Source: Anthoceros angustus
Lineage: Eukaryota > Plantae > Anthocerotophyta
Reading direction: 5' to 3'
DNA: 64,000 nucleotides
Assembly (NCBI GenBank): GCA_010909165.1
Contig: MU008171.1
Span: forward strand, 310,001-374,000
Shown here: in pieces, positions 40,600-61,199 of the stretch
Numbering within the stretch: position 1 is the stretch's first letter
Layout: each line of letters opens with the position of its first letter
Made by a program: the position numbers and the translations under genes
The notes under the pieces: model-generated
Told to the model about the DNA's origin: nothing
Databases searched by the model: none
What the model saw: the letters and a program-made list of their open reading frames with translations, nothing else

Positions 40600-43000
40600 G
40601 TACCAAGAGATTAAAACTAAGGGTTACACTAAACGAAAAGTAAGTCATGATTGTAGGAAAGGTAGTGCCCGCTTAGTCCTTAGGTTTAGGCGAGACTGTC
40701 AGGATAGTACATTCTATTAGGCAACCTGTTCGATTTTTGTTTTGGGTGTAAACCCTGTTCGATATTTGTTTTGGGTGGAAACCCTGTTCGATTTTGATCA
40801 CCTTTCTCCGATGTACATACTATGCATGAAGACGTTCAATCCGTTCAATAAAACATACAGATCGTGGACAGCGCGAGAAGAACACACTAGGCCCGATCTA
40901 TCGAGGCCGAACTAGCAACCAGGCCACAAAGGCCGAATGCAGGTAGAGAGCAAAAGAAAAGAGGTCCAGAGAGCGGGGGAAGCCGGGCCTCCGAAGACGT
41001 ACCAGATCTCGGCATCCCTCCCCCAGGGCCCAGAATTGGCCAGGTCCAGGCCCCTCCGCAGGAAGGCCTGAAAGCTGGCCTTCTCTGCACCAGAAAGCGA
41101 GCTCCACTGAACGCCTTTCCGCAACGGGGCACCAAGGCGAAAGGGCTCCTGAATTCCCGCCCAGTTTAGGGAATGCGCAAGCAGGAGTGCAGCCAGCTCT
41201 CCGAGGTTGGCAACCTGGCAACAGGACCGACATCGTGCCTAACCTGAAGAACTGCAACCTTACATGACAACCAGGCCACATGAGCCTGGTGCAGCCCCCG
41301 CCATCCCTGCTCCTTGTGGATGCCCCCTTTATAACACACAGTTGTAATTCCATCGAACAGGTTTGATGCAGGCTATAAACCCGGCCCTATGCCAAGCTTC
41401 CAGCTTGAGAAGTTGCGGAGGGCATGCCTGAATGTTGGAGGTTCCCCATAAGGTGGTCTCCCATATGCAACAGAGGAGTTTCAGTCGGTTACCAGTCTGC
41501 AAACCTCAAAAAGTCACACCCGCCCAGTGGATCCATAGGTGTTGGATGGTAGCCGCCTAAATAACAGGCCACCACCGATGCTGCAAAAAGGGCCGTTTCG
41601 TGAGACTGTTGATTCCATAAAGGGCAGAGGCTTCAGAGAAAACCAGGGAGGGGGAAGCAAGAGTTCTTCTGAGCCATGCTTCCACAGCCTTCCAATTACC
41701 TGTAGCAAAGGAGCAGAGGAAAAAAAATATGTTCACTCTTGTGTTCCTCTGCCTGGTTGCATAGGGTGCGGTGCGGGATTCCCACAGCTTCGAAAAGTCT
41801 ATCCCACCTGTCCGAGTTGGGAAGGGCAGCCTGCCACATCTTCCAAATTGTGCACCTATGTTTTTCCACAATGCCCTTGCTCTTCCATGAAATTTTCAGC
41901 ATGTGACGTTGAGAAGGGAGGGACACCCAACTTTAGCCGTGGAGCTAATGGATTCCTCCCCTTTGGCTGCAGCTCTTTGACCAGCAGTTTATGGAGGTGG
42001 GATGTGCTGACGTTGAGTAGAGACCTGGAGGCAGGGGAGCCGATTGCCACAGTCTGTGGCCAACGCCATAGGTGGGGGGACAGCGACAGAGATGCAGTGT
42101 CCTGCATATCCGCCCACACCAGATCCCCACCCCAGCAATCTGGCCCGCACAAAGGCTCGTCTTTGAGAAGCCATTGCCTGGAATTTGAAGCACCGAACAG
42201 AATAACTACTTTGCCCTTCCTTCGACCCTGTTTTGTAAACATCCGCAGCAATGCTGCTGCCCTCCAACTTAGATAAAAGCATCACCGAAGCCCCGTCAAG
42301 GGCCAAGGCTGATTGATCAATGCGCGGATCCAGCATAACAAAATCCCCCGGAGCGGAAGTGTCACCAGCATCCAGGGCTGCGGCCACAGTGTCAGCAAGA
42401 CCGTGCTGTACACAGGAAAGCAAAAACTTGGCACACCGGAGATTGATGTTCAATTCAAAAATAAGGTCCTCCGTCAGCTTCCAAGTCTCAGTGGCCAGGT
42501 TCCACGGGAGTCTGAGAGCAAAAAGTCCCTGCAGTCCTGCACTTTTAACGTGCTGATGCCGTTCCACCCGAAGTCGGAATTCCAGTTTCCAAATCTGCTC
42601 AACGCCATGTAAATGCAGAGACAATGCATGAGCCCTACCAGGGGAGGATACCATCTGCACAACTTCGCAGCCCCCTTGTGGCTGGAGCCCTACCAGGGGA
42701 AGAGTTGTGCAGCCCCCTCGTGGCTGGAGCCGTACCAGGGGAAGAGTTGTGCGGCCCCCTTGTGGCTGGAGCCCTACCAGAGAAGGACACCATCTGCACA
42801 ACTTCGCAGCCCGCTTGTGGCTGGACCACATGGATAACCAAAGGGGAGTCCATCTGGGAGCACAACTTCGCAGCCCGCTTGAGGCTGGACCATATCGATA
42901 ACCAAAGGATATGGGTTACTCCATATCAAATCCGAGTACGGGACTTTGAAATATATATAAAGTGTCCGAATTCACTTTTGAAATATCTATAAAATCTCCG
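40600..43000 (-). mobile_element. Decayed Ty1/Copia-like retrotransposon relic (gag-integrase remnants)
   Basis: Degenerate gag knuckle VRCFKF.AM (~42190); integrase-like LQTGNRLKLL (~41490) and RLQFFRLG..SVLLP (cf. HLRVFG..AYV.IP, ~41250) in gag-int order; many frameshifts; 29-bp tandem at 40724-40795. Confidence 0.5.
42628..42908. repeat. Imperfect tandem array (~42-56 bp units, core gcagcccc..gtggctggagccctaccagggg)
   Basis: At least 5 copies of gc.gccc....g.ggctgga visible, and 3 copies of cacaacttcgcagccc. Confidence 0.9.
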
Positions 43001-43680
43001 AATTCACTAAAACAAAGGGGAGAGACCGAAAAGTACCGGTCCCTATCGGTGGAAAACCGTGGGTGGGTGGGAAATGCCGGTTCCCAGAACCGACAGTGTA
43101 GCCGGTCGACATGAAGCCCTGATTCCGTGTTCAACCGCCCTAACAGGGTTAAGACTAGTCACTAGCCCTGAATTCGAAACCCTAACCCTAAACACCACGA
43201 TCTGATTTGAAGTCATATCACGTCCCGACGACGAGGCAAATCTGGCAACCCTTTTACAGCAATCGATCGACCCACGTCTCCATAGTGCAAGGCTCTTGGT
43301 GGAGGGCGGCGGACAGCGGTGGGGGGAATTTGGGGCTTGCCAAATATCGAAAGCGAAGTAGGACACCGGCTTGGCTTTGTTGCAACCAGTGAGACAAGTG
43401 TCCACAAGCAAACTTCTTTATTCTTTATTCAGGGTTGTCGTTATAGGGTTTCTATAAAGTGGAGGTGGATCTTTGTGGCGCCGACCTCTACTCTACTCAT
43501 GGCATCACCAACTAGACAACTCTTCTTTCCTTTGAAAGAGAGCTGTTGGCGGAAGTGGGGAATGGAAAACAGTGCAACTGAATGCAGGGTAGCATATAAG
43601 ATTTTTCTGGAGGATAGTACTTGGGCTTTCCATGGGTGCTGCTGGACCATTGAAGCCGTTAACGGGGCCCCCCACAGATT

Positions 43681-46278
43681 TCATCTCTGCTGCGTGCCAC
43701 TGGCGTCAGATTCAGTGCAGCAGAAAGCAGGCGGGATCGGCCCACAAACATAGTGCGTGAACAGCTTGTTCACGTCGAAGCCATTGAAGCAGCTCCCCGC
43801 CGACTTCGTGTAGGCACCCATTCTAGGGAATACCAGCCAGTCGCCACACTGCAACTGTGGCAGCCACACATTTCTCATAATAGTGTCCAAACCATCACAG
43901 GTGGGACCGAAGATGGTGGACTGATAGAGCTGCTCATCCTTCCAGGAGTCGGTACCTGCCTCTTCTTGTGAAAGGAGGGGAAGGGAGCGCACAGACAAGA
44001 CTGCATGATCGTACAGCAAACAATTCATGGAGCCATAAACTCCATCATTGATCCAGTACTCGGGTATCTTGTTCCCTCCCTTCACCCGCAGTCTGCTTCC
44101 GAAAATATGCGTAGCTAGAGTGAAGGCTTCTTCTGCAAAGAAGCGGCCAGGCTCTGCGATGACAGAGACACCCATAAAGTGAGGGAAGTGCCTGTCCAGA
44201 GCCTGGTTGATTGCTGCAGCAGCCGCCTTGAACCTGACACCGATGCCTCCATCCGAAACGAAGCCACCACCAATATCCAGCACTTTGAGGGGAGGCATCC
44301 CCAAGTTGCCAGCGGTGTCGAACACTCTTCTTGCAGACTGTATTCCGTCTGCAAAGGAGCTAGCCTCCGATGCACCACTGCCCACATGGAACGCAACACC
44401 CACTACCGAAAGTCCTAGGTGTTTGGCTACGGACAGGAGGTGCTCACACTCATCCATCTCTGCCCCATACTTGGTGCCCAGAGGGCAGCGTGCACCACGA
44501 TCTTCCACCCAGATTCGAATAAGCAGCTCAGCCTTGGGATGATACTTTCGAAGCTTGTACAACTCAACTTCAGAATCGAAAGTAGTTCTCAAAATTCCAC
44601 AAGCAGCTGCCTCCACCATGTGCGACGGAAGCTTGCACGGATTTGCAAAGATAATCCGATCAGAAGCGCACAGGACGCTCTTTGCAGCAGCCAGCTCCGC
44701 CTTGCTAGCCACGTCAAGTCCTGCACCCAGGTTCACTAACAAGGACATAAGGCGAGGGTCCCGGTTGCACTTGACAGCATAAAAAGGCTGCACTCTGGGC
44801 ATGGCAGCCTGCCACTCCAACCACAGCCTCAAAACCACCGCAATATCAAGGATGTAGAACGCATCCTCCGTTCCCGAAGCCAAGACCTTCTTCCGGATGT
44901 ACGAATCCATGTCAGTAGAGGAGGTCAGAATGGATGGGTTGACTGCTGACAAGAATGTGCTCAGACGAGGAAGACGCTGCAGGTTGTCGACATGACTCTC
45001 CATCTTCCCACACCCATTAAGCCGACGAGTAGTATCCAGCCTCACAGCCTTGCCCTGCGAGGAATCGGTGTTGGCTCCCACCACCTCCCCAAACAGGGGC
45101 AGCGGACACACAGCAGAGCTCCACAGGCCGGCAATCTTGTAAGTGTGGAAGATGATAGCACTGTTGCTCCCCAACTCCTGCCTGCTGGTAGACTCACATG
45201 CATACCCCTGAGGGCATATGGGCTGGTTCCACGAACACCCTGCCATATCCTGGCTGCTGCACCCCGTCACAAAGAGGGCGACAGAGAATTCCTGCGGCTT
45301 GAACACAGCCACAGCCTTACCCACCAAGCTCTGCAGGTCTGTGGTCTTGGGCCCGTACCCCATAGCCTCGTACGACGCATAAGACCATCCCTCCTCAGGC
45401 GAGATGTGTATCGTGGAGTGCGCTCCTGGACCAGCATGAACACCCAACCCTTCCAGCGCATTCATGCTATACCCGACAGGCTCAAACGCAAAGTCACAGA
45501 TGTCAGCCTGTGGGTTGATATCCGCAATCCCCGATGCCCTGCTCATCTCGGCAGCCGTGGGAAACACGGCCTTCTGGAACTGAGCCGCGCACTGCCTGCT
45601 CAGTTTTGTCATGCAGCACTCCAAGGTGTACACAGGCTCAGCTTGAGCAGGAGCAGCGACATCCTCAGCCTGGGCGCAGTACGCGTGCCAGTTGTGAGGC
45701 TTGGACGGATCCCCCATCACATAGGCCTGGCCTCCTGCACCCAGCCCCCCGAAGAACTTGTCCAGGAACGTCACCTCCTCTGCGAAGCTGGAATGTGGAA
45801 ACGGCTGCACCTCCGGGAAGAGGTAGCTGCCGCGAGTGTACTTCACCCGGTACGTCTTCAACCGCAGGCGAGCTGCGTGGGCCAGCAGCAGCGGGATCGC
45901 CCGCAGCAGCTGCGTCGTCCCGCAGGTCTTGATCACCAGCCTGTGAGGGTATATGAAGAGCGAGCTTTCGCTCAGCACGTAGCTGTCCACCCAGGTGTTG
46001 CTCAGCTCCTTCACAATTGTGCATTCCGCTGCTCTGAGCAGCTTGTTCAAATCCTCCCTGCCGAGCGCCCGCAGTCCCAGCCCTTGGGGATCGGAGAAGA
46101 GCGGAGCCGGAAGGAATTCCACCTCCAGCCTCTTCTCGAAGCCTTCAAATCCTGGAAGCGCCGGTGCTTCCGCTGCTGCTGGTCCTCCTCCTCCTCCTCC
46201 GTCCGTTGCCGCTGCTCCCGCCGCCACCATCCCCGCCGCCCTGTCATCCGGAGCTTCCGGCACAAAAGACACCCCCAT
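43681..46278 (-). CDS. Bifunctional S-adenosylmethionine decarboxylase-ornithine decarboxylase fusion (AdoMetDC/SAMDC-ODC), 865 aa, intronless
   Basis: AdoMetDC motifs GFEGFEKRLEV, DSYVLSE/SSLF (pyruvoyl Ser105), KTCGTT, GYSMN, STIHISPE.GWSYASYE. Fold-III PLP ODC motifs PFYAVKCN (K503), IIFANPCK, FHVGSG, LDIGGGF, AEPGRFF, INDGVYGSMNCLLYDH, FGPTCDGLD (C794), MGAYT, FNGF. One uninterrupted frame with Kozak gccgccATGg. Confidence 0.97.
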   Translation of the reverse strand: MGVSFVPEAPDDRAAGMVAAGAAATDGGGGGGPAAAEAPALPGFEGFEKRLEVEFLPAPLFSDPQGLGLRALGREDLNKLLRAAECTIVKELSNTWVDSYVLSESSLFIYPHRLVIKTCGTTQLLRAIPLLLAHAARLRLKTYRVKYTRGSYLFPEVQPFPHSSFAEEVTFLDKFFGGLGAGGQAYVMGDPSKPHNWHAYCAQAEDVAAPAQAEPVYTLECCMTKLSRQCAAQFQKAVFPTAAEMSRASGIADINPQADICDFAFEPVGYSMNALEGLGVHAGPGAHSTIHISPEEGWSYASYEAMGYGPKTTDLQSLVGKAVAVFKPQEFSVALFVTGCSSQDMAGCSWNQPICPQGYACESTSRQELGSNSAIIFHTYKIAGLWSSAVCPLPLFGEVVGANTDSSQGKAVRLDTTRRLNGCGKMESHVDNLQRLPRLSTFLSAVNPSILTSSTDMDSYIRKKVLASGTEDAFYILDIAVVLRLWLEWQAAMPRVQPFYAVKCNRDPRLMSLLVNLGAGLDVASKAELAAAKSVLCASDRIIFANPCKLPSHMVEAAACGILRTTFDSEVELYKLRKYHPKAELLIRIWVEDRGARCPLGTKYGAEMDECEHLLSVAKHLGLSVVGVAFHVGSGASEASSFADGIQSARRVFDTAGNLGMPPLKVLDIGGGFVSDGGIGVRFKAAAAAINQALDRHFPHFMGVSVIAEPGRFFAEEAFTLATHIFGSRLRVKGGNKIPEYWINDGVYGSMNCLLYDHAVLSVRSLPLLSQEEAGTDSWKDEQLYQSTIFGPTCDGLDTIMRNVWLPQLQCGDWLVFPRMGAYTKSAGSCFNGFDVNKLFTHYVCGPIPPAFCCTESDASGTQQR

Positions 46279-46384
46279 GGCGGCGGATACCTATCCCTCC
46301 TACACTCGTCCGTACGCACGCACCACCTGGACTACAACACTCACTCCCTTCACCTCCCCTCACCAGACAAGACAAAGAAGACAG

Positions 46385-46416
46385 GCAGACAGACAGACAG
46401 ACAGACAGACAGACAC
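46385..46416. repeat. (agac)n microsatellite in the leader or leader intron of the AdoMetDC-ODC gene
   Basis: Directly visible. Confidence 0.9.
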
Positions 46417-46621
46417 GAAGATTGGGCGAATGCGGTTGTGCGGAGCGAGGGCGAGACGAGGCCGCTTCCCCCCCTGGCGGGAGAGCTGATCTGCAAAGCC
46501 GCAGAGCAGCCCCTGGACGGCACGAATTCAAGGCCTTGCAAGCAAGACTAAGCTGCTGTGGTACGGCAGGGCAGTGGTGGCCTCTACGAATGGCAGCTGC
46601 AGCGGGAGGCGGCGTTCGATA

Positions 46622-46945
46622 TCAGGACGGCTTCCTCACGCACTGCGCACAACACAGGGATGGCCATCGTTCATTCGCCAGCGCCATGGAATGAAAGCAA
46701 TGCATTCTCGCAACACCGGGAAGTTCGAGAATGGAAGCATCACAAACGGATGGAAGCAGCACAAACGGATGGAAGCAGCACAAACGGTCGGGTGGATCCC
46801 CTCCCCCCGCCCCCCTCACCTTGCTGTAGGCTGCAGTGCGGAACTTGTCGACTCCTCCGTTGGGGCGAACGTCCTCCGCGACGTAGCCGAGAGGCGTCTC
46901 GAATTGGCGCTTCTGTCCACGATTACCGCCTTTGCTCTCCGCCAT
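46622..46945 (-). CDS. Conserved-peptide 'small' uORF of plant AdoMetDC mRNAs, 48 aa, two exons (46945-46820, 46642-46622)
   Basis: MAESKGGNRGQKRQFETPLGYVAEDVRPNGGVDKFRTAAYSK|CVRKPS* matches the family pattern MESKGG...YEAPLGYSIEDVRP.GG..KF.SA.YSNC...PS; GT-AG intron 46819-46643. Confidence 0.95.
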   Translation of the reverse strand: MAESKGGNRGQKRQFETPLGYVAEDVRPNGGVDKFRTAAYSKVRGAGGGDPPDRLCCFHPFVLLPSVCDASILELPGVARMHCFHSMALANERWPSLCCAQCVRKPS

Positions 46946-46953
46946 TATAGCAT
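46945..46953 (-). promoter_or_regulatory. 'Tiny' uORF (ATG CTA TAA) overlapping the small uORF start by 1 nt
   Basis: Minus strand reads ATG CTA TAA TG; the last A of TAA (46945) is the A of the small-uORF ATG. Confidence 0.92.
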
Positions 46954-48175
46954 TCAGCCAGGAGAGCTGAGACGCGGACATGGAGAGATTGCAGCATGAG
47001 CACGACGCTTTCCGAGAGCGAGGCCTGGCGATCACCCGGCGGCGGGGCGGAAAATGGCGGATGGCGGCGGGCGGCGGGCGGCGGGGATGCGATCCAGGTT
47101 GCCCTAGCGGGGCGGGACGGCGCGGGGAGGGAGCGAGAGGGCGAGAGGGCGAGAGGGCGACGAGGGAGCGAGGCGAAGGAAGCGAGTGCGGGGCTTTTGC
47201 ACACAACACAAGACACAAGGAAGGGAAGGAAGGGAAGGCGGAGGGCGGCAGGGCGCGGGATGTACAAGTGGGGGATCCGAGCCCACTCCCGGGCCAGAGC
47301 CTCGGGGCTCAGGGCTCGGGGCTCAGGGCCGAGGCGAAGCTGGGCGCACGTCGGACGCGGCAGGGCCACGTGAAGCGGTACTAGGCATGGTCAACTGCAT
47401 CATGGGGGCATGCCATCACCCTTGTCATGATGCCACATGTTGGGGGTACACGTGCCTAGGGCCTGGGGGCATGATGACGCCACCGCCACGACCGCCGGGT
47501 CCCGGGCCCCGGACCCCGGACCCCGCACCCCGTCCCTCCAAACCCTAAATCATGGTACGTACAATAGAGGGTGCTCCCCCGAGGCCCGACCGACAGGCGC
47601 CGCGAATCTTCCTGTCATGAAAAGTTCGAGTTCGGCCTCTCAGAGACGCTGGGACCTGAGAAGAGAGAGGGAGAGAGAAGGAGAGAGCCACAGCCTGGTG
47701 CCTGGTCCCTGCTGCCTGCTGCCTGCTTCCTGCTTCCTGCTGCCTCCTGCCTGCTGCATTCCTGCCTCCTCCCTCCTGCCCAACCGCCTTTCCTACCTGT
47801 CTTCCTCCTACCTCCGTATTTTTAGTGAGTATCGTAACGCACACCAATCAATGGATATAAAAAATATTCTATGGTGAATCTTCACCCTAGAATATATACA
47901 TAGAATATAGAATATAGAATATATCCTAGAATATATATATTATTTATACATCAAGGTATATGAAATAAAAATATATTTTATATTAGTTTGGTAATGGGTG
48001 GTAGTGAGTGAAGTAGGTCTTACCCTAAAATTCACAAGCCTAAGGATGATTAGGTAGACATCTTTAACTTATAATTAACATGACAAGGTGTGTAACATGT
48101 GGCCTCTCTAAGTGAATTCTACAATTATCGTTTATCAAGCTTCTTAAACAATTTGCTAGAGACTTCCCAACGTGA

Positions 48176-48415
48176 TGTGATCAACCTTCGTGAACACTTT
48201 GCTACTCACCTCCCAATGTGATCAACCTTCGTGACCACTTTGCTACTCACCTCCCAATGTGATCAACCTTCGTGACCACTTTGCTACTCACCTCCCAATA
48301 TGATCAACCTTCATAAACACTTTGCTACTCACCTCCCAATATGATCAACCTTCGTAAACACTTTGCTACTCAACTCCCAATTTGATCAACCTTCTTGCTA
48401 ATATGATCAACCTTG
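48176..48415. repeat. 41-bp minisatellite, 5 full copies plus partials
   Basis: t(g/a)tgatcaaccttc(g/a)t(g/a)a(a/c)cactttgctactca(c/a)ctcccaa starting at 48176, 48217, 48258, 48299 and 48340. Confidence 0.95.
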
Positions 48416-56947: not shown

Positions 56948-58712
56948 TCGGCCGCCTGCCGAACTGCCGTCCGTTGCGAAAAGGCTCCGAATTGTGTTCA
57001 GGATCCGACTCGTAGGAATCCTCCTTGCCTGGCAAGCATCATCATGCATGTAAGGCCATCAGAGACCGCTAACCAGTGCCTGCGACACACTCCTGGAGGT
57101 GAGAATGGTCTGTTGCGTCTTACACACGACCCTCAACTTGCGCTTGTTGCCACACCCGGGCTCCAACATAGCACGCTCATATCTGTCACCGGTGTCACAG
57201 GTGCAGGAGGGTTGTCGGGGACAGCGTCACATGGCATAAACCTAGCGCAGCATCCATCGTCACTATGTAGTGCAGCACCCCCAATTATTCCACTAGGGTT
57301 TCGCAAATTTGGTGTGCATTTCCGCCAATCCGTCTCTTGCAGGAGCTAATCTACTCCATACCAAGAAGCCAAAGCATGGAAGCTGTGGAGGAAAACGGCA
57401 AATCAACAGCACAGCATGTGACTTGGCTAAGTTCGTGCAAAAGCAGCAAGCCAATTTCGTGAGCTTAATAATGGGTGAGTTTGCTGTCTGAGCAAGCTTT
57501 ACGGTTCGTTTTGAAAACAAACTTGTTTCACAATCGGTTGAAGGATGCATTGCGGGTTCTGCTAATCTCTGCTCTCTGCCAGCACAAATTGTCGGTGACT
57601 GTGACTGGATGGTGCCTCCATGACTAATGTGATAAGCAAAGATTCACCACTGCCTGAGCTTAAATGGCAAGGTCGCAAACAATGTGAGCACGAAGGACGT
57701 TTGATCTATCAGCTGATGGCTGCTGTTCCTGCGATTTGAGCTAGGGTGTGGTTAGGGCACCAATGAACTGTATATGTCAACATGAAAGGTGTCAATTACC
57801 CTGGAAAGCTACCTCAGGTCCTCAGGATGAGCGGGGCAAGAATCAGGCCATGTCATGTGGGAGGGGCTATGTTGCAGACAGCTTTGCTGGTGCTCTATAA
57901 CTACAGGTGTTCGTTTACACAGTTGCAGTAGGGCCATCTGCCTCTGTACAGGTATATTAAAGTTTATTCTGAGAGTGACCGGATTCTGGAGCTCTTGACG
58001 AAACCGTCCCTCGTGTCACCTTTCTTGCCAGACCTGTTTCTTGGAGGAAAGATATCCTGCAGCTGGTAGATATCACAATGACGCAGGCTCTTCGAAAGGT
58101 TCCCTTTCTTCTGCTTTTCGACCATCTGCTCAGGGTTCTATAGTCCCTGACCATCATATGCTCGTTCCTCAGTCGGGTGGAAAACGACAGACATGCACTA
58201 CGACATCAGGCAGCAAAGACTATGAGCTCAGGCCTGCACAGAGGAGATTCTCTCATAACTGTTCTTGAATGATATCTTCGCAAGCTGTTCTTGACTGCAG
58301 GCAGCAGCACAGTGGAGCGAACGTAACGTGGAGGGCAGCAGGTATGTTGAGTGTCGCATGGCGGTGTAGATTTGCGTATGCTAACGCCGCGCAAGCATAG
58401 ATGCAAAATACGAAGTTGAGACGGGTGAACTGAAATACGGCAGCACACGCTTCAAGTGTGGGAGGCCACAGGTGAAACAACTCAACATCCCATCTTCTAT
58501 ACCGTGTCCCCATTTTGATGTAATTAACAGATGTTTTCCTTCAAGCGAAATTGTTTGTGATTTGAGTTACCATTAGGCTGATAGTGACAAATCACTGTGG
58601 TGAGTTGGTGAGTTCCGAGCAGGCCGGTGATGGCCCAGCGTCGTGTCATGCAAACTCATTATAGATTTTGCTCATAGCCCCTGTTGCCTCCTTGAGGCTC
58701 AAAGGGCTCGCC

Positions 58713-61199
58713 ATGGCTGCCATGGCGGGCGTTGCAATTGAATTACGGCAAGGGCAGCAGGACACATTGTGGGGACAGCTGTCCTGGGCTCAGAAAAGTG
58801 GTGGGTTTGCGGGTATTCCAGGAAGAACTCCCGCTCGCCTGAGTTCAATGAACCAACAGTTGGCAAACAACGAAGCCGCGAGGTGCAGCAGCTTTCGGCA
58901 TGGGCTGTCTCAAGAGATTCTGCACAAGCCGTTTCGGGTGGATGCGCAGCTTGCTGCTCCGTGGACGGGGATGGGTCGTCGGGCCTCCAAATCCAATTCC
59001 AGCTTGCTGGATGATCCTGACCTCAGCAGGACTGCAGGATACCAAAGGGCCGTCACCGCTGAAACCGTGATCAAGCTGTGTGATCAGGGCCATCTCAGTG
59101 AGGCTGTGGAGGCTTTGGGAGTTCTTGTCCAGATAGACTGCGGTATCGCCAAATCTCTCTTCTATACACTTCTCAAGAAATGTGCAGTCAAGAAGGATCT
59201 TGTTCTGGGTCGCCGCGTTCATGCATTCACGGTGTCAAAGGGGTATCAGTCAGACACGTTCCTGGGCAACCACATCCTGAGAATGTATGCTTCTCATGGG
59301 AGGTTGGAAGAGGCGATGGATGCGTTCACCATGGTCCCGAAACCAGATAATTTCATGTGGTCTTCCATAATGTCTGCATATGTTCAACACGGACTAGACA
59401 AGGAGGCCATAGAACTTTATCATCGGATGCGCAGGTTAGGCTTGAAGCCAGATGGCCATGTGTTCGTGGCAGCCCTTCAGGCTTGCGCAAGGGGAGCAGA
59501 CCTGAAAACTGGGCAAGAACTGCATGCTGATGTGGTGGCTAGTGGGGTGGAGCCTGATTTGTTTGTCTGTAATTGCTTGGTGGACATGTATGCAAAGTGT
59601 GGCAGCTTGGAAGACGCTCAACGAGTGTTTGACGGACTGAGCAAAAAAGATGTGGTTACGTGGACTGCTATGATAGCAGGACATTCCCAGCAGGGCATGG
59701 GCCAGGAAGCCCTTAGTCTCTACAGTGCAATGCAAGATGAAGGCATTGCCGTACCCAATGCCGTGACATTTGTGTGCCTCCTCCAGGCCTGTGCGAGTGT
59801 GGGCACCCCAGCTTTGGAACAGGGGAAGCAGCTTCATGTGCAGATCAGAAAATGTGGACATCAAGGTGATGCGTTTGTAGCCAGCGGTCTGGTGAATATG
59901 TATGCAAAGTGCGGCAGCCTAGAGGATGCTGAGAGTGTGTTTGAGGGCCTCGTTCAGAAAAACGTGGTGACATGGACTGCTATGATAGCAGGGTATTCCC
60001 AGCAGGGCATGGGTCAGGAAGCCCTTCGTCTTCACAGTGCTATGCAACAAGATGGCATGGCTGTACCTGACTCAGTTACATTCGTGTGTCTTCTTCAGGC
60101 TTGTGCAAATGTGGGCCCCACTGCCTTGGAGAGGGGGAAGCAGCTTCATGCACAACTCAGAGAGCAGGGGCATCAGGCTGACGTGTTTGTAGCCAGCAGT
60201 TTGGTAAATATGTATGCAAAGTGTGGCAGCTTAGAGGATGCTCACAGAGTGTTTGATGGACTTGGGCAAAAAGATGTGGGGACATGGAATGCAATGATAG
60301 CAGGATACTCCCAGCAGGGCATGGACCAGGAAGCCCTTGGTCTTTACACCGTTATGCAAGAAGATGGTATGGCTGTACCCAATGTTGTCACGTTTGTGTG
60401 CCTCCTCCAAGCATGTGCAAATGTGGCAGCGTTGCATGTGGGAAGGCAGTTACATTCACAGATTGAGGAACAAGGGCTTCTTTCTGATGTGTGTGTGGCC
60501 CGTAGTTTGATAAACATGTATGGCAAGTGCGGGAGTATGGTTGATGCACAGCAGGTGTTTGACGTCATGCCCGATAGAGATGTTGTTGCGTGGAGTTCAC
60601 TGATTGCAGGTTATACTTGTCAGGGGAACAGTGATGTGGTCTTCGTCTTGGTCCAGAGGATGAGAGAGGATGGCATACAGCCCGACGCCATCACATTCCT
60701 ACATTTACTCACGGTGTGCAATCATGCGGGTTTGGTAGACAAGGGGAGAGAGTACTTTGAGTCTATGAGCAGGCAGTATCGCATTATTCCCACAGTGGAG
60801 CATTACACATGCATGGTGGATCTCTTGGGCCGAGCAGGCGAACTGGATGAGGCACTATCTTTGGTAAGGGCAATGCCTGTACTGCCTAATGCTGTAGTTT
60901 GGCACAACCTGTTGGGTGCTTGTCGAAAGTGGAGCAACGTGGAGGTAGGACGACGGGCTTTTGATGAAGCAGTGAAGCTAGATGAAAAAGATGCCGCCGC
61001 TTATGTGTTGATGTCAAACATATACACAGATGCCCAGATGTGGGAGGAGGCACAAGAGATGCAGGCCAGGAGGATGAGAATGGGTGCATGGAAGGAGCCA
61101 GGTCAGAGCTGGTGGATCGACATGGATGGATTGACTCATACTTTCTTGGTGGGAGATCAGAAGCAGCCGAAGTGTCAAAGCAAGGTCGAAACAGGTTAA
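58713..61199 (+). CDS. PLS-class PPR protein with E domain and truncated DYW start (PG box PGQSWW); putative organellar RNA-editing factor
   Basis: Long single ORF (58668-61199, first ATG 58713) with a transit-peptide-like N-terminus, repeated MYAKCGSLEDA..VF / DVVTWTAMIAG / VTFVCLLQACA, HYTCMVDLLGRAG, VWHNLLGAC, AYVLMSNIY, KEPGQSWW....HTFLVGD. Confidence 0.95.
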   Translation: MAAMAGVAIELRQGQQDTLWGQLSWAQKSGGFAGIPGRTPARLSSMNQQLANNEAARCSSFRHGLSQEILHKPFRVDAQLAAPWTGMGRRASKSNSSLLDDPDLSRTAGYQRAVTAETVIKLCDQGHLSEAVEALGVLVQIDCGIAKSLFYTLLKKCAVKKDLVLGRRVHAFTVSKGYQSDTFLGNHILRMYASHGRLEEAMDAFTMVPKPDNFMWSSIMSAYVQHGLDKEAIELYHRMRRLGLKPDGHVFVAALQACARGADLKTGQELHADVVASGVEPDLFVCNCLVDMYAKCGSLEDAQRVFDGLSKKDVVTWTAMIAGHSQQGMGQEALSLYSAMQDEGIAVPNAVTFVCLLQACASVGTPALEQGKQLHVQIRKCGHQGDAFVASGLVNMYAKCGSLEDAESVFEGLVQKNVVTWTAMIAGYSQQGMGQEALRLHSAMQQDGMAVPDSVTFVCLLQACANVGPTALERGKQLHAQLREQGHQADVFVASSLVNMYAKCGSLEDAHRVFDGLGQKDVGTWNAMIAGYSQQGMDQEALGLYTVMQEDGMAVPNVVTFVCLLQACANVAALHVGRQLHSQIEEQGLLSDVCVARSLINMYGKCGSMVDAQQVFDVMPDRDVVAWSSLIAGYTCQGNSDVVFVLVQRMREDGIQPDAITFLHLLTVCNHAGLVDKGREYFESMSRQYRIIPTVEHYTCMVDLLGRAGELDEALSLVRAMPVLPNAVVWHNLLGACRKWSNVEVGRRAFDEAVKLDEKDAAAYVLMSNIYTDAQMWEEAQEMQARRMRMGAWKEPGQSWWIDMDGLTHTFLVGDQKQPKCQSKVETG

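Follow-up and report, generated by a model that had tools for sequence, protein, structure and literature searches.

Introduction

The bifunctional enzyme of Plasmodium falciparum carries two polyamine-pathway decarboxylases, AdoMetDC and ODC, in one open reading frame (ORF), with an N-terminal AdoMetDC, a hinge and a C-terminal ODC (PMC3253432). A review published in 2011 described this enzyme as 'unique', with no full structure available and poor expression; channelling was considered unlikely and the benefit of the fusion regulatory (PMC3253432). Plant AdoMetDC genes possess a polyamine-sensing leader made up of a tiny and a small upstream ORF (uORF) (PMC2811004), and in Micromonas pusilla a single accession, XP_003057072.1, has been entered as both ODC and SAMDC (PMC6356823, Table 2).

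Here we analysed a 64,000-nt stretch of contig MU008171.1 of the hornwort Anthoceros angustus (hereafter, the window), which contains a gene of this architecture: a single ORF on a single transcript, with AdoMetDC first, a hinge, and ODC second. As in P. falciparum, its product would catalyse two non-consecutive reactions and is predicted to dimerise through ODC; the chain is 93 kDa, compared with about 170 kDa for the P. falciparum enzyme. It further differs from the Plasmodium type, for which Cardiosporidium and Selenidium stood in in our comparisons, in having plant-type halves that fall in a green clade and the plant tiny and small uORFs upstream. A fusion of AdoMetDC and ODC was reportedly described in Micromonas by Green et al. 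in 2011; judged via the mamiellophyte Mantoniella, which lies in the same green clade, the Micromonas fusion and the window gene very probably belong to one orthologous family, although the latter belongs to a land plant, and not to a prasinophyte alga, and carries a tiny and a small uORF.

With the seed-plant AdoMetDC (potato 1MHM; PF01536, PF08132; PMC2811004) the window gene shares the leader design, the cleavage motif and a place in the same tree, but it has a whole C-terminal ODC, the seed-plant genes being apparently fission derivatives. Its ODC half resembles the eukaryotic ODCs (human 1D7K, T. brucei, standalone seed-plant ODC, Huperzia L/ODC) in fold and active site; it differs in being fused, and its paralog lineage is distinct from that of the standalone land-plant ODCs. 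The two-domain architecture as such is not new, and domain annotations in databases already show it. In a literature search that was thin on subscription journals we found no published description of the fusion, its uORF control or its fission history in land plants.

Results

A single intronless frame encodes two complete decarboxylase domains

The original prediction proposed a plant-type bifunctional AdoMetDC-ODC with the domain order of Plasmodium, and this gene proved to be real and transcribed. The 865-codon frame was confirmed on the sequence as intronless and stop-free (Table 1), and the Pfam scan found both domains complete, as had been claimed, with matches to SAM_decarbox (residues 43-381, E 1e-101), Orn_Arg_deC_N (residues 482-715, E 2e-67) and Orn_DAP_Arg_deC (residues 624-821, E 3e-19). 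The PF01536 match reached 340.8 bits, above the cut-off, and covered profile positions 3-343 of 343, indicating a complete AdoMetDC domain. The ODC half displayed the attributes of a fold-type III enzyme, namely PF02784 and PF00278, the PLP lysine, the glycine loop, EPGR, the CDG cysteine and the ornithine-type Asp. The motifs KTCG, YSMN, STIH, GGGF and AEPGR were all found at their predicted places, and the coordinates given for E104/S105, K503 (44770-44772) and C794 (43897-43899) were correct.

An AlphaFold2 model built from 115 sequences showed two well-folded domains (mean pLDDT 85.3) and a linker that is disordered at residues 385-426 (pLDDT <50). Identity to 20 close homologs was 9% in the linker, as opposed to 51% and 64% in the two domains. 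The best PDB match of residues 42-380 was potato AdoMetDC (1MHM, E 2.6e-72), and that of residues 458-846 was human, mouse and trypanosome ODC (E 2e-98); the modelled ODC half superimposed on ODC structures with a TM of 0.88-0.95 by target length.

A 519-codon antisense ORF at 44992-46551(+) was taken as a shadow of the GC-rich coding strand. Tandem repeats lie on either side of the gene, at 42667-42780 (42 nt, 2.7 copies) and 48175-48394 (41 nt, 5.4 copies). A 280-codon ORF at 41989-42831(-) had no Pfam match, and an 843-codon ORF at 58668-61199 (+) encodes an E-motif PPR protein, of the type used in organellar RNA editing. This PPR gene and the position of the fused protein in the trees are in keeping with a hornwort.

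Table 1. Coordinates of the AdoMetDC-ODC gene and its leader in the window.
Feature	Position	Strand	Evidence and remarks
Spliced transcript contig, run X1 record 1	43467..47212	(-)	3586 nt; contig ends are not transcript ends
Tiny uORF, ATG CTA TAA (Met-Leu-stop)	46945..46953	(-)	Sequence
Small uORF exon 1, 42 codons	46820..46945	(-)	Pfam AdoMetDC_leader, E 2.6e-16
Small uORF intron, 177 nt, GT..AG	46643..46819	(-)	Spliced out in three RNA-like runs, joint 46642/46820
Small uORF exon 2, CVRKPS-stop, penultimate Pro	46622..46642	(-)	Exon-wise comparison
Bifunctional AdoMetDC-ODC proenzyme ORF	43681..46278	(-)	865 aa, 93 kDa, intronless, stop-free
AdoMetDC domain, residues 43-381	45136..46152	(-)	Pfam, homolog alignment
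Putative self-cleavage site E104/S105	45964..45969	(-)	Motif and alignment; predicted cleavage
Linker, about residues 386-455	44914..45123	(-)	AlphaFold2 pLDDT, homolog identity
Fold-type III ODC domain, residues 458-846	43741..44907	(-)	Pfam, structure matches, alignment

Spliced transcripts span the junction of the two halves

The transcript contig of run X1 showed 0 mismatches over 43467-46347 and carried the uORFs and both domains. As the GT..AG intron of the small uORF is missing from it, this contig represents a processed transcript. In run X10, from a related species, one 3984-nt contig spanned the entire ORF and likewise lacked the intron; it had 169 mismatches over 43544-46305 and, near 45631-45633, a 3-nt deletion that keeps the frame. 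In both species, therefore, a single transcript contig crosses the AdoMetDC/ODC junction. Contigs of DNA run X2 do break at 45078-45088, within the linker, a point in favour of the two-domain ORF being an assembly chimera or a read-through artefact; however, short X2 contigs bridge 45059-45108, and the spanning transcripts of the two species, together with an architecture common to over a hundred homologs, rule out such an origin, to which we assign practically no credence.

A second AdoMetDC gene was detected in DNA and RNA-like runs of A. angustus; it matches the window gene only in the conserved FEGFEKRLE stretch. The evidence for this paralog lies at 46121-46155 and 45899-45951 and is also present in the related species, with a higher contig depth. 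Since this second gene is transcribed, the fixed 1:1 enzyme ratio that had been proposed holds within the fused polypeptide, but not necessarily in the cell.

Catalytic residues are retained in both halves

In an alignment with 114 homologs, the catalytic residues of both halves were invariant or nearly so, and all of them are present in the window protein. The AdoMetDC half retains E45, E48, E104, S105, C119, S271, H291 and E295; of these, E45, E48, C119, S271, H291 and E295 correspond to human Glu8, Glu11, Cys82, Ser229, His243 and Glu247, and we take R50 and R149 to be the putrescine-mimicking arginines of the potato enzyme. The ODC half keeps K503 (PLP), R588, K603, H631, GGG 670-672, E709 and R712, as well as D757, C794, D795 and Y823. 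D757 is the counterpart of human D332, the ornithine-type residue, and from its sequence the ODC half is predicted to be of the ornithine type, although it may conceivably also have lysine activity, as in plant L/ODCs. At 44762, DNA run X2, from the same sample, has T for C, which would result in R506Q; this may reflect an allele of the strain or a difference between assemblies. The predicted cleavage products have computed masses of 10.7 kDa (a 104-aa beta chain) and 82.7 kDa (a 761-aa pyruvoyl alpha-ODC chain).

Two positions of the AdoMetDC half are unusual: V268, which is Cys in 113 of the 114 homologs, and S293, where all 114 have Thr. These substitutions at near-invariant positions, an end branch of 0.63 as compared with 0.32 for the ODC half, and the second AdoMetDC paralog in the DNA and RNA runs are what would be expected if, within an ancestral fusion, the AdoMetDC half of the window protein were a weak or dead scaffold or regulator, the paralog making the dcAdoMet and the gene acting as a uORF-regulated ODC. 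We consider this unlikely, as E104, S105, C119, S271, H291 and E295 are all kept, the domain is complete and confidently folded in the model, the change from T to S is conservative, and several divergent fusions likewise have a residue other than Cys at the V268 position.

The leader carries the tiny and small uORFs of plant AdoMetDC genes

The leader of the window gene shows the three traits of plant AdoMetDC leaders: a one-base overlap of the tiny and small uORFs, the last base of the former being the first base of the ATG of the latter, a PF08132 match, and a penultimate proline. The small uORF ends 343 nt upstream of the main ATG. By analogy with the plant genes (PMC2811004), this leader would confer polyamine-responsive translational repression. 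Two more ATGs are found upstream, at 46997 and 46981 (-); the second, 46981, shares the reading frame of the small uORF, which it would lengthen by 12 codons.

Marchantia, Selaginella, Klebsormidium, Trebouxia and a fern-clade transcript all proved to have the small uORF upstream of the fusion in an exon-by-exon comparison; in Micractinium and Crustomastix only its terminal KPS motif was seen. A pattern scan found the tiny uORF in the four streptophyte loci, and the tiny/small arrangement of the window is repeated in Marchantia, Selaginella and the fern-clade transcript. In Klebsormidium the tiny uORF has a greater length and the small uORF is extended.

The fusion is widespread in green plants

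A full-length search returned 695 proteins, and 117 of the best 120 contained both domains. Named fusions were found in land plants (Marchantia, Riccia, Calypogeia, Selaginella, Psilotum, Adiantum, Ceratopteris and Pteridium), in streptophyte algae (Mesotaenium, Netrium, Coleochaete, Closterium and Klebsormidium) and in chlorophytes (Trebouxia, Micractinium, Bryopsis, Tetraselmis, Pyramimonas, Nephroselmis and Mantoniella); Chlorokybus, Mesostigma, Mesotaenium and Spirogloea were assigned from identifier prefixes. Among the named matches in the best-120 lists there was no moss or seed-plant fusion, and in the best-120 lists of the single-half searches mosses and seed plants were returned as standalone proteins only. 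The fusion ORF is intronless in Marchantia and Selaginella and contains introns in Klebsormidium, Micractinium and Trebouxia.

A HMMER scan of 50% cluster representatives yielded more, divergent fusions, and AdoMetDC came first in all 169 two-domain proteins. Outside green plants, named fusions with this order occur in the apicomplexans Cardiosporidium cionae (P0436) and Selenidium serpulae (P0398), with intact catalytic residues, and in Diphylleia rotans (P0387), where these residues are nearly intact. Further non-green fusions (P0422, P0461, P0393, P0395, P0391, P0399, P0382 and P0386) belong to several eukaryotic lineages. Apparent tandem double-ODC proteins were also seen (P0242, P0245, P0081, P0107 and P0385, including Ephemera, Acipenser and Medioppia), which may be merged gene models.

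Standalone AdoMetDCs nest among the fusions

Separate trees were built for the two halves from chosen subsets of the matches, with 70 rows for AdoMetDC and 63 for ODC. In the AdoMetDC tree, whose sampling was without standalone chlorophyte and non-green AdoMetDCs, the window protein lies inside land plants (99/96), where it groups with lycophytes and euphyllophytes (97/88), its exact place among land plants being weakly resolved. The moss and seed-plant standalone proteins are nested among the fusions, and the tree broadly follows the species tree. Monophyly of all 31 standalone AdoMetDCs was rejected (p-AU 1.75e-7), with the proviso that pieces of fusions may be among the 'standalone' rows taken from transcript assemblies. 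Rooting on the non-green fusions gave the same nesting, with bootstrap values that were not fully settled. In the ODC tree the window protein falls in a land-plant fusion clade (100/97), and the standalone ODCs of Sphagnum, Lycopodiaceae and seed plants form a separate clade (100/95). Forcing the window ODC into this standalone land-plant clade was rejected (p-AU 7e-5, for a group defined after the tree was seen).

In several relatives a full AdoMetDC is joined to an ODC half that is either truncated or full-length but catalytically dead: P0164 (Marchantia paleacea, 562 aa), P0172, P0173 and P0117; from their sequences, they look like fission in progress. P0117 (813 aa) has neither the PLP lysine nor the catalytic cysteine, and may be a decaying remnant or possibly a regulatory pseudoenzyme. 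Given the nesting of standalone AdoMetDCs among fusions and these decayed ODC halves, the best reading is that the moss and seed-plant standalone AdoMetDCs are products of repeated fission. HMM searches of the N-terminal extensions that standalone ODCs carry in Huperzia, Klebsormidium, Closterium, Mesostigma and Ginkgo found no remnants of AdoMetDC.

These results do not support the idea of an independent fusion from plant-type parts put forward in the original prediction, as the fusion is spread across green plants, the plant standalone AdoMetDCs are nested within it and the ODC half belongs to a lineage other than that of the standalone land-plant ODCs. It is true that both halves are nearest to plant sequences, that the ORF is intronless and that the genes are separate in seed plants, as would be the case had standalone AdoMetDC and ODC genes joined recently in the hornwort lineage. 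However, fusions occur green-wide in trees that are broadly species-like, those of Marchantia and Selaginella are likewise intronless, and grouping of the ODC half with the land-plant standalones is rejected, so that a recent fusion of standalone land-plant genes is rejected under the models used and appears highly improbable. The grouping of both halves with other green fusions instead assigns the window gene, on sequence grounds, to a green-plant AdoMetDC-ODC family.

Relationship to the fusions of apicomplexans and other protists

Both halves of the window protein fall outside the apicomplexan fusions in our trees, in which Cardiosporidium and Selenidium stand in for Plasmodium; this excludes a recent transfer and is still compatible with a deep shared origin. 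A wider quick ODC tree recovered the green sequences as one clade (SH-aLRT 100) without the apicomplexan and Diphylleia fusions, on an unresolved backbone. Transfer of a green fusion to apicomplexans is unsupported, since apicomplexans lie outside the green ODC clade. Because same-order fusions in Cardiosporidium, Selenidium and Diphylleia lie outside the green clade, the proposed convergence with the Plasmodium fusion is, at the level of sequence, unproven.

Conceivably, the green, apicomplexan, Diphylleia and other protist fusions share descent, the separate genes of animals and fungi being fission products. The catalytically intact or nearly intact fusions of the three named protists and those of several other non-green lineages, the uniform AdoMetDC-first order, and the recurrent fission seen in plants are consistent with such a descent. 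Nevertheless, non-green fusions are scattered among standalone proteins in the quick tree with its unresolved ODC backbone, the linkers are not alignable, few non-green rows have a taxon name in homolog searches that favour query-like proteins, the Diphylleia fusion comes from one transcriptome, and passages of PMC12803844 dealing with ODC and AdoMetDC in the last eukaryotic ancestor make no mention of a fusion. We therefore regard this common descent as possible but doubtful.

Discussion

Together, our data make it probable that the window gene is a hornwort representative of a bifunctional AdoMetDC-ODC that goes back to the ancestry of green plants. Judging from what is known of the two enzyme families, the proenzyme would self-cleave at E104/S105 to generate its pyruvoyl cofactor, the short beta chain would remain attached to the alpha-ODC chain, and the ODC halves would pair to form shared active sites, giving a Plasmodium-like (beta, alpha-ODC)2 complex. 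The two sites would act in parallel and without channelling, supplying dcAdoMet and putrescine to spermidine synthase; the logic proposed for Plasmodium, of a regulatory benefit without channelling, should hold for this enzyme. When polyamines are high, initiation would move away from the tiny uORF and towards the small one, and both activities would be switched off together.

In evolutionary terms, the fusion would be older than the chlorophyte-streptophyte split, and mosses and seed plants would owe their standalone AdoMetDCs to duplicates that repeatedly lost the ODC half; the standalone land-plant ODC would be a separate paralog lineage that split off among streptophyte algae. A broader scenario, in which the fused form is the original state of green plants and perhaps of wider eukaryotes, together with Plasmodium, the separate genes arose by fission and the uORF first co-regulated both activities, is advanced here only tentatively; its green-plant part, taken by itself, is likely.

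If so, the usual picture of plant polyamine genes would be reversed, with an old fused enzyme and a derived, separate AdoMetDC in crops and mosses, and in seed-free plants the ODC route would be tied to the AdoMetDC translational switch. Furthermore, a compact 93-kDa plant enzyme could be a tractable model for studying the cross-talk between the two domains.
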